Both the position numbers and the translations under genes were made by a program. Below, one piece after another: positions 2,768 through 31,294 of a stretch of 64,000 nucleotides of DNA; the first letter of the stretch is position 1; each line of letters opens with the position of its first letter. The stretch spans positions 124,001-188,000 of IMG/VR virus record IMGVR_UViG_3300037294_000266; one strand, 5' to 3'. The notes beneath the pieces were generated by a model. That model did not search any database and was not told where the DNA came from. It saw only the letters and a program-made list of their open reading frames with translations.

Positions 2768-3598
2768 ATGTTCGAAGAACTCTCCAATATCCTTAGAGAC
2801 CGCGTTAGCCCCGAGGTCGGATCAGGGGTAGCTGAACTGGTCTCGGCACTTGAAAAACATAATGCAGTCATGTACAAAGACCGCATCAATAACTTAGCCA
2901 TGGATGCTAACAATCGCGAAAGCATCACTCTTGCAGATGAAGCCATCTCTATTGTCTACAGTCAGGCAAATGCTCTTCTCCAACAGATGCATTTAGAGCT
3001 GGATGTAGAAGCCATACAGATGTCCCGATTGGCGCTAATTCTCGATGCCTTGTTGTTTGACAAAAGCGATGACGACGACGAGATCAGTCGTATCATTGAA
3101 GAGGGTGAGGACTCGGTCGATGTCTTCTGTGAGATCCTTGCAGTGAAACTCAACCTGCAGCCAGAGCATCTAATGGACATCGTAATTGGTGTGCCTGAAG
3201 AATGCATCGCGGCCATCGAAGAAAAGATCACTAAGAACCTCAGTCATTCTGACGAAGCAGTCGATGGCGTTGAGGCTATTGCCAGACTTCTCAATCGTCA
3301 TCAGGACCTCGTAGGTGCAAGTACCATCGGGATGGAGTCGTATTCTGACAGTAATGCCGTTGTCGGTATCGATCCAATGGTTGTCATTGAACGTCGTAAA
3401 GATGAGCTGCTCAAGCTAAGTCCTGAAGACCTTGCTGATCAACTTATCTCTATCGCTATCCTGGCTGACGTTTCTCTCGACACGCTTCAAGCCGAAGTGA
3501 TGCTGTATGTTGAGATGATCATCCACGATCCATTCGCTGTTCAGAAAGCTTATAAGCGTACCGTTAGCCGAATGGCTGGGTTGAGGAATGTGTCATGA
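2768..3598 (+). CDS. Conserved hypothetical, probably virion-associated, all-alpha acidic protein (phiKZ gp79 position)
   Basis: 276 aa, AAGGA RBS, ATGA overlap with the virion RNAP subunit gene. Confidence 0.7.
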   Translation: MFEELSNILRDRVSPEVGSGVAELVSALEKHNAVMYKDRINNLAMDANNRESITLADEAISIVYSQANALLQQMHLELDVEAIQMSRLALILDALLFDKSDDDDEISRIIEEGEDSVDVFCEILAVKLNLQPEHLMDIVIGVPEECIAAIEEKITKNLSHSDEAVDGVEAIARLLNRHQDLVGASTIGMESYSDSNAVVGIDPMVVIERRKDELLKLSPEDLADQLISIAILADVSLDTLQAEVMLYVEMIIHDPFAVQKAYKRTVSRMAGLRNVS

Positions 3599-4944
3599 AG
3601 AAACTTGAATTCTACGTCGAGGCACTTAAGGCCAAAGCATATCATCGCAAAGACTGGGTGATCAGTGCATTTGCCGTGGTGCGTGAAGCGCCTCGCAAGG
3701 ACATGACAGGTGTAGTCCTCTCTATTGAAAATGAGGTTCCTGCCGCTGGACCTGGATTGTACAGTATTCGATACAACCGTGAATCGACTGAGGTGTATGT
3801 TTCATCTTTGGAAGGGGATGTATGGGTCAGTATCGATGACACAACGCCAATGACCCCTCTGTTCTACGCCTCTGACGAACTTCTTGTCACGTCTGATGTA
3901 ATCCCAAATTGTTCTGAGAACGTCAAATCTACATACGGCGATCTTCTCTTCAATTGGATGGTTCTTGTCGAACCCTTCGGTGCCCGAATTGCTTATCAGA
4001 CAGGTCCTGTCTCGATTTCTAAGATCGAGCGGATGATTGCTAAGAAATTGGTTGACGATCCATCGGTGGCTGGCCGTGTTCCGGCGGACGACGAGATACC
4101 TGTTGGCATGTACATGCGCTTTGGGCGCTGCATGGGTGCTCTGGCAGGGTTTGTTCAAGTGTTTGTACCGACACTGACGCCTAAGTCACTAACGACTGAC
4201 CCGGCCATCAGAGCGCGTCGTACAGAGCTCTTGGCAGAAAGCGCAGACCGCCTTCAGGATCCCGTTGTGGTATCAAAGATCCAGAACGAACTCATCCTCA
4301 TGGATAAGGAATGGATTAAAGACGATCCGTCCGAAGGGTTCTTGTTGTCCAACAAGACGTTTGCCACCGCCCGTAAGCGGATGTTCATCATCCACGGTCC
4401 TGAAGCCGGGTTTAATGAAGGCGGTAACGCTGATCTGGTTGTAAACAGTCTTAATGAAGGTTGGGACCTTGATAAGATCGTTCCAATGTTCAACTCGACT
4501 CGTGCGGGTTCGTTCTATCGTGGGGCATTGACCGCATTGGGTGGTGAGGCTGTGAAGTTCTTTATGCGGGTGTTCCAGAACGTTAACATCAGTGAAGATG
4601 ACTGCGGCAGTACTCTCGGCGTGTTCCGCACCATTGAGAAAGGTCAGGCAGAATACTACACTGGGCTGTGGGAGTTAACCAAAACAGGTCTGGCTGTGGT
4701 AACTGAAGAACGTGCTAAGGCAATGGAAGGTAAAACCATCCTGACCCGGTCGCCTTTGTTCTGTAAAACCGGTGAGACAGACTTCTGTGCTAAGTGTGTG
4801 GGTGAGGCACTTGCGGCCATCCCCAATGCCATCAGTTCAGAGAACACGTCGGTAGCGTCGAACTTCATGAGTATCATGATGGCTTCTGCTCACGCCAAAG
4901 AACTGAACACCGCACAGCTTAACTTCGAAGAAGCATTTACCTAA
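3595..4944 (+). CDS. Virion RNA polymerase beta' C-terminal subunit (phiKZ gp80-like)
   Basis: beta' motifs EDDCGS and RSPLFCK...FCAKCVG (Zn site), plus a bridge-helix-like region TALGGEAVKFFMR. Confidence 0.88.
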   Translation: MKKLEFYVEALKAKAYHRKDWVISAFAVVREAPRKDMTGVVLSIENEVPAAGPGLYSIRYNRESTEVYVSSLEGDVWVSIDDTTPMTPLFYASDELLVTSDVIPNCSENVKSTYGDLLFNWMVLVEPFGARIAYQTGPVSISKIERMIAKKLVDDPSVAGRVPADDEIPVGMYMRFGRCMGALAGFVQVFVPTLTPKSLTTDPAIRARRTELLAESADRLQDPVVVSKIQNELILMDKEWIKDDPSEGFLLSNKTFATARKRMFIIHGPEAGFNEGGNADLVVNSLNEGWDLDKIVPMFNSTRAGSFYRGALTALGGEAVKFFMRVFQNVNISEDDCGSTLGVFRTIEKGQAEYYTGLWELTKTGLAVVTEERAKAMEGKTILTRSPLFCKTGETDFCAKCVGEALAAIPNAISSENTSVASNFMSIMMASAHAKELNTAQLNFEEAFT

Positions 4945-4956
4945 TCAAGGTGCGCC

Positions 4957-7785
4957 ATGAGCGACAAACAACACGACAATTATCCAGAAGCATGGTCACA
5001 GTCAGACATTGACTTCTTCGTCGCCACTGGCAAAGAACCTTCGAAAACATCGAACGGTCTCTGGACAGGTGACCTTGTCCGTGAACAGAAAGAACTTGCC
5101 GACTGGAGCATGGCAGAACTATTTGCTCTGGTCAGCGGTGAGTTATTCACTAAGAAGGTCATTGGCGACGATACCTTCTACAAAGTCGTTCGAGGCAAAG
5201 CGCTTCTCGAAGACTCAGACGCTATTCGTTGGGGTGAAGAAGACCTCATGGAGTGGCTCCTTCATGAAAAGACACCTGCACGTAGTCCTGGCGGTTTCTA
5301 TTTGAATGACCCTGAGCGTTGGACTAAGGACGGTGATCACTGGCAGACGCCTGAACTGATTGACCTCGGTCTGGGTTACTTCGGTGAGTTAGAACGCAGT
5401 AATCAGTACATCCTCGATGAGATCAGTGATCGGTTCGAACTGCCGTTTGGCATTACGTTCGATGCGTTCAAACTCTACGTCGAGAAGAATGTCCGGCCTG
5501 AAGTAACTAAGGGCGGTGTTCTCATTGATGACCGTCGTCGTGCCGGTAAGCTCCTGAGTGCTTGGACAGACGATGAAGTGGAAGCATGGGCACGTGGTGA
5601 GATTGAAAGTGATCTCAAGGGTCTTCTAGAGCGTGGCATCGAGCAATTCGGTGGCGAGTGGTACTGGGATCGCGATGCCCTTAAGTTCTGGGTTGAGACG
5701 GGCGATATGCCTGCTTTCGTACACGACTATCAAAGTTATTCTGATGAGCAGTTGAATCTTCTCATCACTAAGGAAGATGACAGCGGTGCTAAGGAAGAAT
5801 GGATTAAGCGTCAGCCTGAACCAGAAGCTGTCGAGGAAGAACAGTCCGTTGAACTGGACGAGGCTGTTATCGAAGAGCCGTTCCAAGATGAAGAACCTGT
5901 TGTTGAAGTTCCGGTGGAAGAGGAAGACGAAGTCAGTCCTGTCGAAGAGCCAGAAGTGGTCGTCGACGTCCGAGATACCAACTGGGTTGAGCTGGTTAGA
6001 GAAGACACTCCTCTTCACCTGGCGATGGTAGGTGAGACTTCTGTAGATGTCATTGAAGACCTCGACCGTCGGAAGCTTCTAAGTGCCAGTCGTTGGACAC
6101 CTGAAGAACTGGCTGGTTGGGTTCGTGGATTAATCCCCATGGGCAACAACACCAGCGTCAGTACTCTGATGACAGCCATCAGAGGCCACTGTGGAGCGTT
6201 TGTCACTAACTGGACAGATGGTGCGGTTAAAGCATTCATTCTCTCTCAGGAGCTTCCTAAGGGCTTTAACGAAGGCATGTTGGCTGAAGACATCGTCCGG
6301 GATAAGAAACACCCTGGAAGTTGGACTGATGACGAGTTAGTAGCCTGGGCACGTGGTGAGATCATCACTACGTCAGACCCTAAGCAAGTGCTGTTCAGCA
6401 TGCGTGTTCGAATGAAGGTTCCTGATCGACTGACTTCAGAGCAGGCGATGACATACGTCGCTACTGGGAAATTACCTGTGGATGCAATCCCTGCAATTGA
6501 AGCCGGCAAGCCCGTTTCAGAACGGCAGCTATTGGCCTGGTTGAAAGGTGACTTGAAGTTATCTGCCGGTTTCGACACCAAGCCTTTATTTGATCTTGTA
6601 CGGTCGATGTTTAGGATTGATGTTCATTGGACAGATGACTGCATCATTGGTTGTTACCGTAACGGCACTGTTCCAGCGGTATTGGAAGGTGGTGTCTTGG
6701 TCAACGACCGTCTTCGTAATCTTGACAGCCCAGGTAACTGGTCGTGGAAAGAACTTCGTTGCTTGGCAAAAGGCGAGATCCATGCTAACTTCGAAATCGA
6801 AGATGCAATCGACCGCGTTCGTCGTTTGATCGAGATTCAATTTGGCATTGGTGCAGCACACTGGGGCGTTACTGAAGTACTTGGCTTCTTAATGACAGAG
6901 ACCAAACCAAAGTCATTAAGCGACGGGGTCATGGTCAACGATCCTACTCGTCAGGCTAAGGATCTTTCTAACTGGCGCGATGCTGAACTGAAAGCTTGGT
7001 TACGTGCTGAGATCGAACTTCCGGTTAAATATACAGAAGATGACGCATGGTCTGAGGTTTATAGCCGGTTTAAAGTACCGTTGTTCTGGTATCGTGAAGA
7101 TGCTAAGACGTTTGTTCTTACAGGGACTGAAGTTAAATCCCTGCCGTCTGGTATCTGGGTACGCGACATCAACCGAGATGCTCGACCTGCACGTCACTGG
7201 ACTCGCCGTGAAATCAAGGCATGGGCCCGTGGACAAATCGTACCGGGCATTAAAGCGTCTGAAAAAGAACTGGCTCAGCAGGCAGTTAAACTGTTCGGGC
7301 TTTCGATTTACCTTGATCTTGATGGTATCAAGAGTCGGGTAAGTTCCATCACTGAGGAATCAATCACCATGACAATTGCGTTTGTACTCCAAGATCTCGA
7401 TGCCTATGAAAAGGGTCGGAAAGAAGCAGGCGACAATGCCACCGTTGCTGCGCCATTCCAATCCATGTTGGATCGTTGCATCAACCGCGTCATCAAGCTG
7501 GAAGGTGAAGACTTCAACCAAGGCTGGACTGAGCTGTTGAAGTTCTACCATAAGAACCAAAATGGCTGCTGTTCGTTGAAGCAGGCTTACACAGGCGTTG
7601 GCCAGATGGCCATCACTCCTAAGTCGCTTCGTCAGTTCCAGAACATGACGACTATTCTCGTCCGGACGTGCGATCCTTCTAAAGCAGCAGCCGCTGCCAA
7701 GTTGATCGATTGGACAGTGGCTTTGAAAGAAGTGACTAACGAGAAGTCGCGGCAACAACTGCTTGCTTATTACGGCATTCAGTAA
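4957..7785 (+). CDS. Large Trp-rich tandem repeat protein with acidic linker and C-terminal helical domain
   Basis: 942 aa; about 9 copies of D-x-x-R-x(6-8)-W-x-x-x-E-L-x-x-W-x-x-G-E-I; E/V/P-rich linker at about aa 280-340. Confidence 0.85.
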   Translation: MSDKQHDNYPEAWSQSDIDFFVATGKEPSKTSNGLWTGDLVREQKELADWSMAELFALVSGELFTKKVIGDDTFYKVVRGKALLEDSDAIRWGEEDLMEWLLHEKTPARSPGGFYLNDPERWTKDGDHWQTPELIDLGLGYFGELERSNQYILDEISDRFELPFGITFDAFKLYVEKNVRPEVTKGGVLIDDRRRAGKLLSAWTDDEVEAWARGEIESDLKGLLERGIEQFGGEWYWDRDALKFWVETGDMPAFVHDYQSYSDEQLNLLITKEDDSGAKEEWIKRQPEPEAVEEEQSVELDEAVIEEPFQDEEPVVEVPVEEEDEVSPVEEPEVVVDVRDTNWVELVREDTPLHLAMVGETSVDVIEDLDRRKLLSASRWTPEELAGWVRGLIPMGNNTSVSTLMTAIRGHCGAFVTNWTDGAVKAFILSQELPKGFNEGMLAEDIVRDKKHPGSWTDDELVAWARGEIITTSDPKQVLFSMRVRMKVPDRLTSEQAMTYVATGKLPVDAIPAIEAGKPVSERQLLAWLKGDLKLSAGFDTKPLFDLVRSMFRIDVHWTDDCIIGCYRNGTVPAVLEGGVLVNDRLRNLDSPGNWSWKELRCLAKGEIHANFEIEDAIDRVRRLIEIQFGIGAAHWGVTEVLGFLMTETKPKSLSDGVMVNDPTRQAKDLSNWRDAELKAWLRAEIELPVKYTEDDAWSEVYSRFKVPLFWYREDAKTFVLTGTEVKSLPSGIWVRDINRDARPARHWTRREIKAWARGQIVPGIKASEKELAQQAVKLFGLSIYLDLDGIKSRVSSITEESITMTIAFVLQDLDAYEKGRKEAGDNATVAAPFQSMLDRCINRVIKLEGEDFNQGWTELLKFYHKNQNGCCSLKQAYTGVGQMAITPKSLRQFQNMTTILVRTCDPSKAAAAAKLIDWTVALKEVTNEKSRQQLLAYYGIQ

Positions 7786-7787
7786 CA

Positions 7788-7828
7788 AAGAAAAAAAGAT
7801 AGAGTAGGGGCTTCGGCCCCTACTCTAT
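7788..7828. terminator. Bidirectional terminator
   Basis: ATAGAGTAGGGGC-TTCG-GCCCCTACTCTAT with an upstream A-tract, between convergent genes. Confidence 0.85.
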
Positions 7829-10425: not shown

Positions 10426-12585
10426 TCAAGGTATTTCTAAAGCGTAGCGTGACACCACTTCGTTATGAGACAGTACCTTCCGATGAAAGAAGTCTTTCTT
10501 ATTACGGTGGTATTTACAATGCTGCTCGATCTCAAGACACATGAAGTAAATGAATTCAGGTGAGACATCAGGGAAATCAATGAGCGGGCGGGTTCGACCC
10601 AATACCTGTTCATTAGACTGACGTGAGTCTACTGCGGTGGTCATGAATGAACAACGCAGGTTCTTCAAGTCGATTGCTGTACCACCAGAACCAAGCGTGG
10701 TTACACCGATGTCACATTCCAACAAGTCCTCGTAGGGATCGTTCTCAGACCCTGCATAGCGAACAACGTTGAACTCCGGATACATCTTCTTAAGGCGCTC
10801 GACCATCAACGTACACAGGTCAACCCGTGAGAAGAACACTAAAGCTTTCTGCCCTTCTTCCCTCACTGAGACGTAACGGTTGTAGATCGCATCATCGATG
10901 ATTTTAAGGTAGCTCTTAAGCAACCCTTTATGTCGCATGATGGATTCTTCAAACGTCGTGTGAGAGTAACCCTGCGCGCCCATGAACTTAAGACGTATGT
11001 CCTGGTCCATGTGGTACATCATTGCTGTCACGTCAATGTAAACGTGATACCCGCCACCGTCATGTCGCTGGTTAATCGGATAGCCGATGTCGTACACACG
11101 GTTCTTGAAAGCATCTGAACTTGTCATGGTAGCAGACAGGCCCAGTGATTTAGGGACGTGGGTATACAGATCGATCCTGTAGTTGTTATGGAACTCTTGG
11201 TGAAGTTCGTCAGTCACGCGAAAGCCGACATTGAGCTTTGGATAGAAATCGATAGGCTTGATTGGATAGAGCTTACTCAGGCCGTTAGATTCTTCGTAGT
11301 TCTTAATGTAGTCACGCATCGTAGCCGAGGTGATGATGATGACCTGAGCTTTCAGATCACCGTCTAACGCCATCTGCTGCAACGCAATCATGTCCTTCGC
11401 ACCACGGACAACAAAGAAGTCGCCGCGCTTGAATTTGAAGGTCTTCTCGAGGTCATCCTTCCAGCGACTGACATAGCCGCCTTTGAAGTGAATGACTGTC
11501 CTGACCTTCATCTGGTTCATGCAGTACTGTGCCACGTACGTGTTGTGAGTGACAATGAAGTCTTTCACAACAAACAACTTCGACGGATGTGCCACCGCTA
11601 TACATACCGCTTCACCAGGCACTGGCAGGGGGATGATAGACTTGATTGCGAGCAATCCGGACTTAGGCCTGAGTTCGATCGACACTGACACTCGATCGTC
11701 ACCCATATCTCGCAAGGTAGCCAAGCCGCCAATTGAACGTACTGCAAATACCACTCGCTTAGCTGTCGCACCGTCGAGTACATATACGCCATCTGCTGCA
11801 CGGCCAAGGCATCTGACAATGCCTACAAATCGTTCACGGAGCCCAGCACGTTCAGGTTCAATCAATGGCACGCTGACAGCCGTCTTACGGATCAGCATGT
11901 TCATGACTGTTTCAGTGGTTACTGTCCGCCAGCCTGAGAACGAATTAACGTGCCAAAGGTGCTCGAGGTCTGCATCGACGAAACGACCGTCTTCGAACGT
12001 TACGCGGTAAAGCTTCTTAGGGCCTTGTGGGTAGACACCTGTGACTTCGGTGGACGTGCCGTCTTTAGACACGACAAGATCGCCTACCTTTAACTGTCCC
12101 ATTAGTTTCCAGCCACCAGGAACACGGACAGGCGTCTTAGCGCAGAGTGCTTTACCACCACCTGTCTGCAACGTTACCATTTTAATAATGGGATCCCACT
12201 TTGGGTTCTCAGTATCAAGTACGTATTCGATGATCCCTATCTGCTTCTCACGAGGCGGGAACATGTGACGGACATCGAACTCAACCTTAGGGATGTCCGC
12301 AATGGTCACTCCATGGTGCACAATGGGGACTAGGTGTTCGACGTAGCCATTCATCCTAAAGAGATGACGTTTTAATTCCTCGAGTTGGTTCCTATGGAAA
12401 CTGAATTCCTTTCGGTCGCGTGTTGCTGCTGCGTATGTGCGCAGACCCTTTGGTATGAATCGTTTACCTTTCTTCTCGAAGCCCATCTCGATAAGTGGTT
12501 TGCAAAACGAAAGCATTGCCTGTAGGTCGCGTTCATTCAACACATCTCTAACTTTGATGGTGTGGCTATAAACGTCAATTTTCAT
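10426..12585 (-). CDS. SF2 (UvsW/DEAD-like) helicase, intein-containing (phiKZ gp75-like)
   Basis: Q-motif PREKQ, Walker A TGGGK/T split by an intein, DELH, GLSAT, and QVLGRTR motif VI. Confidence 0.92.
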   Translation of the reverse strand: MKIDVYSHTIKVRDVLNERDLQAMLSFCKPLIEMGFEKKGKRFIPKGLRTYAAATRDRKEFSFHRNQLEELKRHLFRMNGYVEHLVPIVHHGVTIADIPKVEFDVRHMFPPREKQIGIIEYVLDTENPKWDPIIKMVTLQTGGGKALCAKTPVRVPGGWKLMGQLKVGDLVVSKDGTSTEVTGVYPQGPKKLYRVTFEDGRFVDADLEHLWHVNSFSGWRTVTTETVMNMLIRKTAVSVPLIEPERAGLRERFVGIVRCLGRAADGVYVLDGATAKRVVFAVRSIGGLATLRDMGDDRVSVSIELRPKSGLLAIKSIIPLPVPGEAVCIAVAHPSKLFVVKDFIVTHNTYVAQYCMNQMKVRTVIHFKGGYVSRWKDDLEKTFKFKRGDFFVVRGAKDMIALQQMALDGDLKAQVIIITSATMRDYIKNYEESNGLSKLYPIKPIDFYPKLNVGFRVTDELHQEFHNNYRIDLYTHVPKSLGLSATMTSSDAFKNRVYDIGYPINQRHDGGGYHVYIDVTAMMYHMDQDIRLKFMGAQGYSHTTFEESIMRHKGLLKSYLKIIDDAIYNRYVSVREEGQKALVFFSRVDLCTLMVERLKKMYPEFNVVRYAGSENDPYEDLLECDIGVTTLGSGGTAIDLKNLRCSFMTTAVDSRQSNEQVLGRTRPLIDFPDVSPEFIYFMCLEIEQHCKYHRNKKDFFHRKVLSHNEVVSRYALEIP
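11542..12150 (-). mobile_element. Class 3 mini-intein (203 aa) in the helicase P-loop
   Basis: Starts with Ala (ALCAKTPV...GQLKVGDLV); block B EHLW, block F CIAV, block G VTHN followed by Thr+1. Confidence 0.9.
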
Positions 12586-29307: not shown

Positions 29308-31218
29308 TTAGAATCCAGGGCCGTGACCGAAGCCATTGCCCACGCCACCGCGCTGGTTACGCGAACCATCACCCATAGTGCGACGACCAGAGGTCATGCC
29401 ATGAGTCAGATCGCCACCAACGAAACCACGTACCTGGCTGTTACCACGAACGCGACGAGCGCCGAAGTTGTAGTGAGCCTGACGCTGATCGATGTTGATC
29501 TTGCAATCAACGATCGCTGCGGCGATAGCTTCCACGAACTTCGGATCGATGTACGCCAGTTCAACGTAACGAGCGAAGTGAACGCCGGACGCAGTCAGAG
29601 CCTGGGTCAGCTGGTCATACTGCTCGGATACGCGGATCTCAACATCGAGATCAGTACGACCAACGATGTCTTGGTAACGCATGGCCGACTCACCTTCGTC
29701 AGAAGGATTGGTAGCCATCCAGCGCAGCAGGTCCCAGTCGCGCAGGTCGCGCACTTTGCCGTTCTCGTCGATCCAGGTACCGGTCAGGTAACGAGCACCC
29801 GAGGCAACCAGAGGAGTTTCCACGCCCAGTTCGCGAGCACGACGAGTGAAGTTGCCGTTGGTCAGACGATCGCAGTATGCGTACAGACGGCGTACAGCCG
29901 AACCGTCAGCGCTGGTATCGTTAGCGGCATCGGACAGCAGGCTGGTCAGCCAGCTATTGTCGCCACCTTCTTCCAGCTCGATCGCCCATGCCAACTTGTC
30001 GTCAACGAGGGAGAAGAAGTACTGACCCCACTTGTTCACATCCAGGCTCGAACGGCCGTCGAATACCACTGGCGAATTATCTTCGTCAGGGCCGAGGATG
30101 TTCAGCAGACCGGTGTCCTTGAAATCGGTCTCGCCACGGGCAAGATCGTTTGGCAGGAAGGTCTGTGCCCACGCCTGGTCTTTGGTTACAACGGAAGCAG
30201 CACCCAGGGCCAGAAGCAGCAGCTCAGGAGTGATGGCGTTGTTGGCCGAGTCCATGCGGTTGATGATGAAGGTCGGGGTGTAATGAGGCTCACCACGACG
30301 GCCAGCAGGTTTCCAGCGCTCTTCTTGAGCTGGCGGAGTGTAGACCAGTTCAACGTAACCGCCGATCGAAGACAGGCCGATTGGCAGCGACTGCTCGCCT
30401 TTGCGGATGATGCCGGCTACCGAGATCGACAGATCAGAGCGACGCGGCAGGCCATCAGCGGTGTAGCTTTCACGACCGGACATGTCGACGTTGATTTCCA
30501 ACGAAGATTGCTTGCTCAGCCAATCCAGGTTGAAGTAGACGTCGTTGTTGAACGCATCGTTGTTGGTGGAGGTCAGAGCCACCTGGCTGTAGAACACAAC
30601 CGAGCGCACTTCAGTGGATTCAGGATCGTTGAAGTCAACACCCTTATCCACGATACGCCAGCCGGCGCGAACGATTTCGATGCTGCGGCGCGTGGCTTCG
30701 AACTTCTTCTTGACGATATCGTCGATCAAGGCCAGGTAGGACTCGGTCACGTAGTCAGAAGGAACGACTGGCAGCGGGTAGGTGCGGCCGGAGATTTCGA
30801 CGTTGCGAACGGCAACTTCGTCGAGCAGCGATTGGCCGAGGGCCAGGGAGTGGACCAGAACCTTAACACCGTTGTTGGTTTCGATTGGCAGAGCCAGGAT
30901 AACCGACGACAGGGAAACGTTATGTTCAGTGGCTTCCAGACCCATGATCTCGATCTTGCTGAGATCGATGTTCGAAGAACCGGCGACGTTACGCTCTGGA
31001 TCGAACCAGAACTTTACGGCTTTGATAGCAGATACCAGGACTTCGCCGCTGGTACGGCGGGACATCGGAGCGCCCAGGAGGCGGTTGATATCGAGCAGAC
31101 CGGCCTGATAACCTTGGCTTTCGCGAGCAGGGCGTTCAGTGCGGGTTTGAGCTTGTGCTTGATCGCGACGTTCTTGGCCGAGACCGTCGTTGTTGGTGCT
31201 TTCGTCATTGACTGCCAT
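29308..31218 (-). CDS. chmA: Chimallin, phage nuclear shell protein
   Basis: 636 aa upstream of nvRNAP beta'-N. Motifs DGLPRRSD, TPELLLLAL, AWAQTFLP, DTGLL, GTWID..RDLRDWD and KFVEAI match the chimallin sequence I recall. Strongly biased codon usage. Confidence 0.92.
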   Translation of the reverse strand: MAVNDESTNNDGLGQERRDQAQAQTRTERPARESQGYQAGLLDINRLLGAPMSRRTSGEVLVSAIKAVKFWFDPERNVAGSSNIDLSKIEIMGLEATEHNVSLSSVILALPIETNNGVKVLVHSLALGQSLLDEVAVRNVEISGRTYPLPVVPSDYVTESYLALIDDIVKKKFEATRRSIEIVRAGWRIVDKGVDFNDPESTEVRSVVFYSQVALTSTNNDAFNNDVYFNLDWLSKQSSLEINVDMSGRESYTADGLPRRSDLSISVAGIIRKGEQSLPIGLSSIGGYVELVYTPPAQEERWKPAGRRGEPHYTPTFIINRMDSANNAITPELLLLALGAASVVTKDQAWAQTFLPNDLARGETDFKDTGLLNILGPDEDNSPVVFDGRSSLDVNKWGQYFFSLVDDKLAWAIELEEGGDNSWLTSLLSDAANDTSADGSAVRRLYAYCDRLTNGNFTRRARELGVETPLVASGARYLTGTWIDENGKVRDLRDWDLLRWMATNPSDEGESAMRYQDIVGRTDLDVEIRVSEQYDQLTQALTASGVHFARYVELAYIDPKFVEAIAAAIVDCKINIDQRQAHYNFGARRVRGNSQVRGFVGGDLTHGMTSGRRTMGDGSRNQRGGVGNGFGHGPGF

Positions 31219-31294
31219 TTGGACAGACTCCTTGGTATTTAAAAGTGTTACTAGGACCTAGTGAACACGAAGCTGTACTCCGGTATTCAACTTG

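Follow-up and report, generated by a model that had tools for sequence, protein, structure and literature searches.

The window analysed herein is a stretch of 64,000 nucleotides covering positions 124,001 to 188,000 of IMG/VR record IMGVR_UViG_3300037294_000266, which is 266,646 bp long. At 4957-7785 it encodes a protein of 942 amino acids (aa) built from Trp-rich repeats, an acidic linker and a helical C-terminal domain (C-domain). This protein is a member of the Chimalliviridae gp81/gp77 family (phrog_18270 / 18957 / 7825). Its C-domain is homologous to the capsid decorator gp77 of phage Goslar, its gene stands in a conserved gene order, and its repeat is restricted to the family, in which copy number varies. 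With a probability of roughly 0.6, the protein is read as a capsid surface decoration protein, in which a conserved C-terminal anchor would carry an acidic repeat arm of about 800 residues projecting from the head. The features of the locus are as follows.

2768-3598, plus strand: phiKZ gp79 homolog, 276 aa, opening the conserved gp79-gp80-gp81 block (phrog_5038, E 2.7e-18)
3595-4944, plus strand: virion RNA polymerase (RNAP) beta' subunit, phiKZ gp80 homolog, 449 aa (phrog_2962, E 2.4e-132)
4947-4952, plus strand: Shine-Dalgarno-like AAGGTG, 4 nt 5' of the ATG
4957-7785, plus strand: 942-aa gp81/gp77-family protein (P0001), ATG to TAA (phrog_18270 and phrog_18957)
5023-5703, plus strand: distal block, units 1-3, residues 23-249 (unit model; net charge about -18)
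5704-6012, plus strand: linker, residues 250-352, opening with a short conserved stretch that looks helical and continuing as a hypervariable acidic spacer rich in E/V/P/D
6013-7350, plus strand: proximal block, units 4-9, residues 353-798 (unit model; unit 6 shortened, unit 9 basic)
7351-7782, plus strand: helical C-domain, residues 799-942, a homolog of the capsid decorator gp77 of Goslar and the putative anchor on the capsid
7799-7828, no strand assigned: GC-rich 13-bp hairpin 3' of the 942-aa gene, likely terminator, with convergent genes on either side

The 942-aa protein is specified by one open reading frame (ORF) running from ATG 4957 to TAA 7785, just as an earlier note, made from the sequence alone, had placed it, and has a mass of 107 kDa, an isoelectric point (pI) of 4.8 and a net charge of -53. 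The gene is single-copy, and no paralogs of the unit or of the C-domain were found among the six-frame ORFs of the whole genome. Its upstream neighbour, which the same note had called a virion RNAP subunit, is identified as such by the phrog_2962 match; in a tblastn search it matched 307 phage records, PHIKZ080 included (29% identity, E 7e-50). For the preceding gene, phiKZ gp79 itself matches phrog_5038 at E 7e-91. The stop codon of the gp80 homolog lies at 4942-4944, the Shine-Dalgarno-like element falls within the 12-nt gap to the ATG, and no terminator-like site was found between the two genes. On sequence grounds, co-transcription of the 942-aa gene with the gp80-type virion RNAP gene is plausible. 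The hairpin at 7799-7828 has a T-run on its minus-strand side and an A-run upstream on the plus strand.

Repeat units and the acidic linker

Repeat boundaries were obtained with a hidden Markov model (HMM) seeded on six units of the protein (3, 4, 5, 7, 8 and 9). The three left-out units were recovered with independent E values of 1e-10 (residues 23-101), 4e-5 (102-176) and 3e-6 (the shortened unit, 523-563). In total, nine units of about 77 aa occupy residues 23-101, 102-176, 175-249, 353-430, 428-504, 523-563, 567-647, 646-723 and 720-798, giving a plan of three units, an acidic linker, six units and a helical end domain. The earlier note had described about nine Trp-rich repeats, one of them shortened, in the same arrangement of three, linker and six, and both the unit boundaries and the linker charge bear this out. 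Comparison of the protein with itself by BLAST gave no off-diagonal matches, because the units share only about 18-33% identity; the self-similarity that the note had proposed to check is instead seen in the recovery of the left-out units. Furthermore, when a family profile of 57 units was run against the 1956 six-frame ORFs of the genome, only the 942-aa ORF matched (E 2e-176; runner-up 0.008), and the repeat is therefore not a compositional artefact. A triplet block duplication (3, 6, 9, 12) was considered and rejected, as the unit-versus-unit scores had no block pattern and unit 8 was merely the one nearest to the consensus.

The consensus unit reads G-x-x-P-x-x-T-x-x-G-x-x-V-x-D-x-x-R-x7-W-x3-E-L-x-A-W-x-x-G-x-I ... 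F-x5-W. The protein contains 33 Trp residues (3.5%), most of which are at least 90% conserved across 33 orthologs. Eight of the nine units are acidic to neutral (pI 4.5-6.1), the exception being unit 9, which adjoins the putative anchor and has a pI of 10.3. Mean pairwise identity among orthologs is 0.61 for unit 1, 0.65 for unit 2 and 0.45 for unit 3, and it is 0.63 for units 8 and 9.

The linker is composed of 25 Glu, 16 Val, 11 Asp and 9 Pro, among other residues, and has a net charge of -30. Among orthologs, it varies in length from 85 to 146 aa, with an identity of 0.30 and 47% gaps; in relatives with 10-12 units, the matching region holds weak repeat-like sequence. The AVE (291-293) and SVE (297-299) triplets, which the earlier note had likened to sites of phiKZ-type prohead proteases, are indeed present. 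Nevertheless, [SAG]-x-E sites are neither enriched in the linker (4 observed, where its own composition predicts 2.4; P = 0.19) nor conserved, since ortholog linkers contain 0 to 6 of them with no conserved position, and three (P0005, P0024 and P0028) have none. By its length, sequence variability and Pro/Glu/Val content, the linker resembles a disordered, self-repelling spacer more than a site of processing.

The C-terminal domain, the family and the predicted fold

The link to a structurally located protein is provided by the C-domain, which is the best-conserved region among orthologs (identity 0.69) and is 143-147 aa long in all 44 homologs. A profile of the last 298 residues, compared with PDB sequences, retrieved 11fg_A, 'Capsid Decorator gp77' (212 aa, E 2.6e-5), and hhalign paired the C-domain with Goslar gp77 at 81% probability and about 21% identity. 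In addition, a C-domain HMM of 123 sequences matched residues 76-207 of Goslar gp77 (132 of its 212 residues) at E 1.5e-13, phiKZ gp81 at 7e-29, and a 166-aa Seoulvirus (SPN3US-like) protein, encoded just after a gp80 homolog, at 4e-8. Over the aligned residues 119-207, 11fg_A is the translation of Goslar_00077, a gene that directly follows Goslar_00078 (the gp80 homolog, 32% identical to that of the window) and Goslar_00079. The same profile search also retrieved 36za_7 (147 aa, E 1e-5), whose aligned sequence is that of 11fg_A. This chain is named 'Inner-peripheral baseplate spoke gp220', yet it has the gp77 sequence and is present in 60 copies in its entry, as would be expected of the capsid decorator; a mislabelling, either in the entry or in the table, is the probable reason for the name. 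In agreement with the sequence profiles, a Foldseek search of the BFVD predicted viral structures returned about 20 short Chimalliviridae proteins consisting of the C-domain only (probability 1.00, root-mean-square deviation 2-4 A, about 150 columns), and many of the BFVD matches are only 150-290 aa long and align across this domain.

The position of gp77 in Goslar has been determined by cryo-electron microscopy. The protein occupies the exterior of the capsid, lodged between two subunits of the major capsid protein (MCP) (PDB 11fg, 11mk and 11ml; Basu et al. 2026 preprint, 10.64898/2026.04.21.720040). One clear copy and at least two weaker ones are seen per asymmetric unit, and gp77 is also found on empty, portal-less capsids that have no internal vertex complex (10.64898/2026.04.21.720040). 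Moreover, it is retained on mature virions, with at least 60 copies per head (10.64898/2026.04.21.720040). A co-fold of one mature-length MCP (residues 142-722) with residues 790-942 of the 942-aa protein, run without alignments, scored 0.00, a value that counts neither for nor against binding; the natural site spans two MCP subunits.

The whole protein matches phrog_18270 ('virion structural protein') at E 1.7e-54 in six stretches, and its C-terminus matches phrog_18957 at E 4.9e-7. A core member of phrog_18270 is phiKZ gp81 (473 aa, E 1.5e-227), which has two recognisable units and the C-domain, and by sequence and gene position the 942-aa protein is an expanded ortholog of it. The order of gp79, gp80 and then the family gene on one strand recurs in seven other genomes and contigs, namely Pseudomonas phage pPa_SNUABM_DT01 (DT01), phiKZ, 201phi2-1, RVTF4, Goslar, where the block reads gp79-gp78-gp77, and the metagenomic contigs L011 and L012, which encode forms with 16-17 and 7 units, respectively, beside their gp79 and gp80 neighbours. 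DT01 is the nearest isolate, and its ortholog (QTH80367.1, 966 aa, 'hypothetical protein') is 48% identical and likewise has nine units.

The number of units on this domain varies widely. A word-based search returned 43 full-length homologs, about 33 of which share the plan of three units, linker, six units and C-domain; homologs of 1167-1270 aa have 10-12 units, and two of about 850 aa have 6-7. When the unit profile was compared with 1.84 billion representative proteins, 133 were found at E <= 0.001. The C-domain closes 112 of the 128 newly found repeat proteins, the remainder being mostly fragments or doubtful, and the repeat thus appears to be essentially private to the gp81/gp77 family. 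Repeat-bearing proteins have 1 to 15-17 units, two being the commonest number. The copy classes on the C-domain are 0 (Goslar and the Seoulvirus-type 166-aa protein), 1-3 (phiKZ-like, the mode), 6-7, 9, 10-12 and 15-17. The longest arrays, of 1410 aa (L011:5001-9233) and 1439 aa (P0046), have 15-17 units and keep the C-domain, and the 1410-aa relative likewise follows gp79 and gp80 homologs.

AlphaFold2 models built on ortholog alignments gave a predicted local distance difference test score (pLDDT) of 91.1 and a predicted template modelling score (pTM) of 0.85 for residues 645-942, with an all-helical C-domain, in line with the helical domain of about 140 aa expected by the earlier note. For a four-unit piece (residues 352-648), pLDDT was 90.8 and pTM 0.57. 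The high pLDDT with the lower pTM suggests that the units are well folded in the models and that their mutual orientation is less certain, which would fit an elongated or jointed arm. In these models, each unit forms a compact module that is mostly helical and includes a short hairpin. Neither model found a solved fold by Foldseek against the PDB (best E 0.64 and 0.9), in fold libraries that predate the Goslar entries. An ESM Atlas fold search gave template modelling scores of at most 0.27, a wide VIA-align search returned generic helical or sub-threshold rows only, and a protein-feature search of the structure atlas gave no usable match. Pfam contained no family for the whole protein at E <= 0.1, the sole NCBIfam row scored 15.8 bits against a cut-off of 410, and the unit matched none of TPR, HEAT/ARM, Sel1, PPR and ankyrin by profile or fold. 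The repeat family, which the earlier note did not recognise, therefore still has no confident counterpart among known repeats, although the protein itself is no orphan, given its phiKZ gp81 ortholog.

A probable capsid decorator with a repeat arm and its alternatives

The reading as a capsid decorator is based on phrog_18270 membership, the homology to gp77, the synteny, the location of gp77 in Goslar, the combination of a constant anchor with a variable outward part, the tie of the repeat to this anchor, and the single copy of the gene. By homology with Goslar gp77, the C-terminal 144-residue domain would dock on the outer face of a T=27-type capsid, between neighbouring MCP subunits. The N-terminal portion of about 800 residues, which has no counterpart in Goslar gp77, would form an arm leading away from the shell. 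Followed from the anchor, this arm would comprise six well-folded units of about 77 residues, an acidic Pro/Glu/Val spacer of about 100 residues that is probably a flexible, self-repelling tether, and a conserved, acidic three-unit distal block. Each unit would consist of a helix, the G-x-x-P turn, a short hairpin (T-x-x-G-x-x-V-x-D-x-x-R), the W-x3-E-L-x-A-W-x-x-G-x-I segment and two more helices, with the conserved Trp residues probably serving as core residues. With at least 60 copies per head, as in Goslar, such arms would make the capsid 'hairy'. Constraint on the anchor and on the tip, together with freedom in the spacer, is the pattern expected of an anchored arm with a functional end, and the distal units are conserved well enough to suggest a specific ligand, for example a host envelope or matrix polymer, or an intracellular assembly partner. 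We infer that the C-domain binds the capsid of its own phage, that the arm points outward and that it may have a ligand.

Comparison with known systems places the protein as an elaboration of an existing type. Goslar gp77 has a homologous helical C-domain of about 130 residues, belongs to the same phage family and is encoded after gp79 and gp80 homologs; however, it is only 212 aa long and has no unit, whereas the 942-aa protein adds about 800 N-terminal residues with nine units and a linker. phiKZ gp81 and 201phi2-1 gp140 have family, synteny, repeat type and C-domain in common with it, but are 467-473 aa long and have two units after an N-terminal region of about 110 residues, in place of nine units and an acidic spacer. 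As a type, the outer capsid decorator of Chimalliviridae dates from a 2026 description, and the 942-aa protein would be a strongly elaborated variant of it, with a repeat domain that has no Pfam entry or structural match. T4 Hoc and similar decorators combine a capsid-binding domain with a string of Ig-like domains. The proposed likeness to Hoc lies in a small conserved C-terminal capsid-binding domain, an outward string of modules and a module number that varies between phages. In contrast to the Ig-like beta sandwiches of Hoc, the present modules are helical and Trp-rich with an unmatched fold, there is no sequence or fold relation, and the phiKZ homolog of the 942-aa protein may be fitness-conferring.

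Several observations weigh against a decorating role. A location on the capsid has been seen for Goslar gp77 only, to which the C-domain is about 21% identical and which has no repeats. Neither of the high-resolution phiKZ structure texts searched mentions gp81; the phiKZ virion atlas (2026), as far as it was searched, is silent on it and lists gp35 and gp244 as the proteins of the capsid exterior. The two-repeat homolog may accordingly be missing from the shell, present at low occupancy, or so flexible that it escapes detection. The search of the literature for phiKZ and gp81 did not bring up the 2024 phiKZ capsid paper; the texts found contained no statement on the function or location of phiKZ gp81, and no DT01 proteome was found. 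The GenBank note on 201phi2-1 gp140 makes no mention of detection by mass spectrometry. Furthermore, phiKZ orf81 (L004:8413-9834) received 0 disruptive transposon insertions in 1422 bp (Table S2, 10.1101/2025.11.23.690004), in a screen with a genome average of one insertion per 42 bp (10.1101/2025.11.23.690004). phiKZ gp81 thus appears to confer fitness, barring a polar effect on orf82, and this would be unusual for a pure decoration protein. Finally, the invariant adjacency to the virion RNAP gene could reflect a functional link with the RNAP. In the same screen, PHIKZ079 had 0 and PHIKZ080 had 3 disruptive insertions, and orf81 has 12 insertions with low read counts in the raw table (10.1101/2025.11.23.690004).

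The second-best reading, although rather unlikely overall, is an assembly or trafficking factor in place of a lasting surface ornament, the C-domain of which would bind procapsids while the arm contacts the nuclear shell or docking site, PhuZ filaments, the virion RNAP for loading, or neighbouring 'bouquet' particles. The absence of disruptive insertions in orf81 is consistent with such a role, as are the position beside the gp80 RNAP gene, which is invariant across very distant Chimalliviridae, the silence of the available atlas text on gp81, and the presence of gp77 on empty capsids, which places binding before packaging or makes it independent of it. On the other hand, gp77 stays on mature Goslar virions, and the phiKZ record terms gp81 a structural protein. 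The transposon sequencing signal may be polar on orf82, a kind of case that the authors of the screen document (10.1101/2025.11.23.690004), and a range of 0 to 17 repeat copies is easier to reconcile with an adaptive outward part than with a fixed intracellular partner.

The interpretation offered by the earlier note, in which the protein would be packaged within the head, cleaved in its linker by a prohead protease of the phiKZ type and ejected along with the DNA as an early scaffold or binding solenoid, is improbable. In its favour, the gene shares a block with two genes associated with the head (the records of phiKZ gp79 and gp80 read 'structural head protein'), the linker contains the AVE and SVE triplets, and Chimalliviridae inject many proteins. 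The phiKZ inner-body and ejected proteins (PF12699: gp93, gp95, gp97 and others) are likewise virion-associated, come from the same phage family and are encoded near head genes. However, the homologous domain of Goslar gp77 lies outside the shell and is present even on empty, portal-less capsids. The 942-aa protein has no PF12699 domain (Pfam, E <= 0.1) and no conserved protease sites, and its [SAG]-x-E count is close to chance. Moreover, the phiKZ gp81 record carries no head-protein label, and the protein is not named as injected in the literature searched. Taken as a whole, the earlier interpretation is partly supported: its description of the architecture holds, whereas its packaged and ejected scaffold does not. 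Least probable of all is a nucleic-acid-binding array with a SAP/HeH-type helix-extension-helix core (a pair of short helices with an extended, Gly-containing loop between them), to which three weak, independent pointers, none significant alone, might be taken to lead (among them Pfam Ish1, which we take to be HeH-type, in 4 of 57 units with a best E of 0.015, and the Ku70 SAP domain as the best PDB sequence match of the unit profile, E 0.15), since eight of the nine units are acidic, the net charge of -53 disfavours binding of phage DNA or RNA, and the whole protein lacks a Pfam match at E <= 0.1.

A further extension of the decorator reading can be put forward tentatively. The unit may be a new fold that only nucleus-forming jumbo phages use, to build capsid fibres whose length can be tuned, from 0 to about 17 units. 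In the clade of the present phage, each head would then bear 60 or more acidic arms about 800 residues long, with a spring-like Pro/Glu/Val spacer in every arm and three conserved units at its tip, and these arms might form a functional coat that binds a host surface or matrix ligand or organises capsids in the cell, through phage nucleus docking or bouquets. Each of these two roles would account for the intolerance of the phiKZ homolog to insertions.

Genome context and implications for Chimalliviridae

The window also encodes a chimallin homolog, further multisubunit RNAP genes, with both RNAP sets present, the large terminase and the tail sheath. Because of this gene content, the phage is assigned to the nucleus-forming jumbo phages of the Chimalliviridae.

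29308-31218, minus strand: homolog of chimallin, the phage nuclear shell protein (phrog_4795, E 3.5e-67)

An opposite-strand ORF of 639 aa at 29323-31242, overlapping the chimallin homolog, is almost certainly a shadow frame. A megablast search against the phage collection gave no match. The sequencing runs that matched 3595-7785 were DNA runs, with no RNA run among them. One salt-lake metagenome run contained 99% of the sampled words of this region and is probably the source sample, and four runs of a single sediment metagenome study contained 27%, indicating a relative. DT01 infects Pseudomonas aeruginosa and was isolated from sewage water, so that the clade spans very different habitats. 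A salt-lake origin may add to the acidity of the protein, an explanation tempered by the finding that the linkers are acidic in all orthologs.

A separate observation concerns the UvsW-like helicase of 719 aa at 10426-12585 (minus strand), which contains an insertion of about 203 residues (about residues 146-348) right after the Walker A motif 'TGGGK'. The insertion is missing from the 517-aa DT01 ortholog, with both flanks 73-83% identical. It starts with Ala and ends in ...VTHN followed by Thr, gives a weak Hom_end_hint match and, in PHROG, matches the same stretch in unrelated proteins; a mini-intein within the P-loop is the probable explanation.

Structural resolution of the capsid surface in nucleus-forming jumbo phages has only just begun. 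The present analysis joins three things, namely the uncharacterised phrog_18270, a solved decorator, and an undescribed repeat domain that occurs in 0 to about 17 copies on a constant anchor and merits a domain-family entry. The result is a testable model of variable capsid fibres in Chimalliviridae, for which DT01, with its nine-unit ortholog, offers a cultivable test system. Binding of host or matrix polymers by the arm would make it relevant to adsorption and host range in therapeutic jumbo phages, and a role in assembly would make it relevant to the handling of capsids around the phage nucleus.

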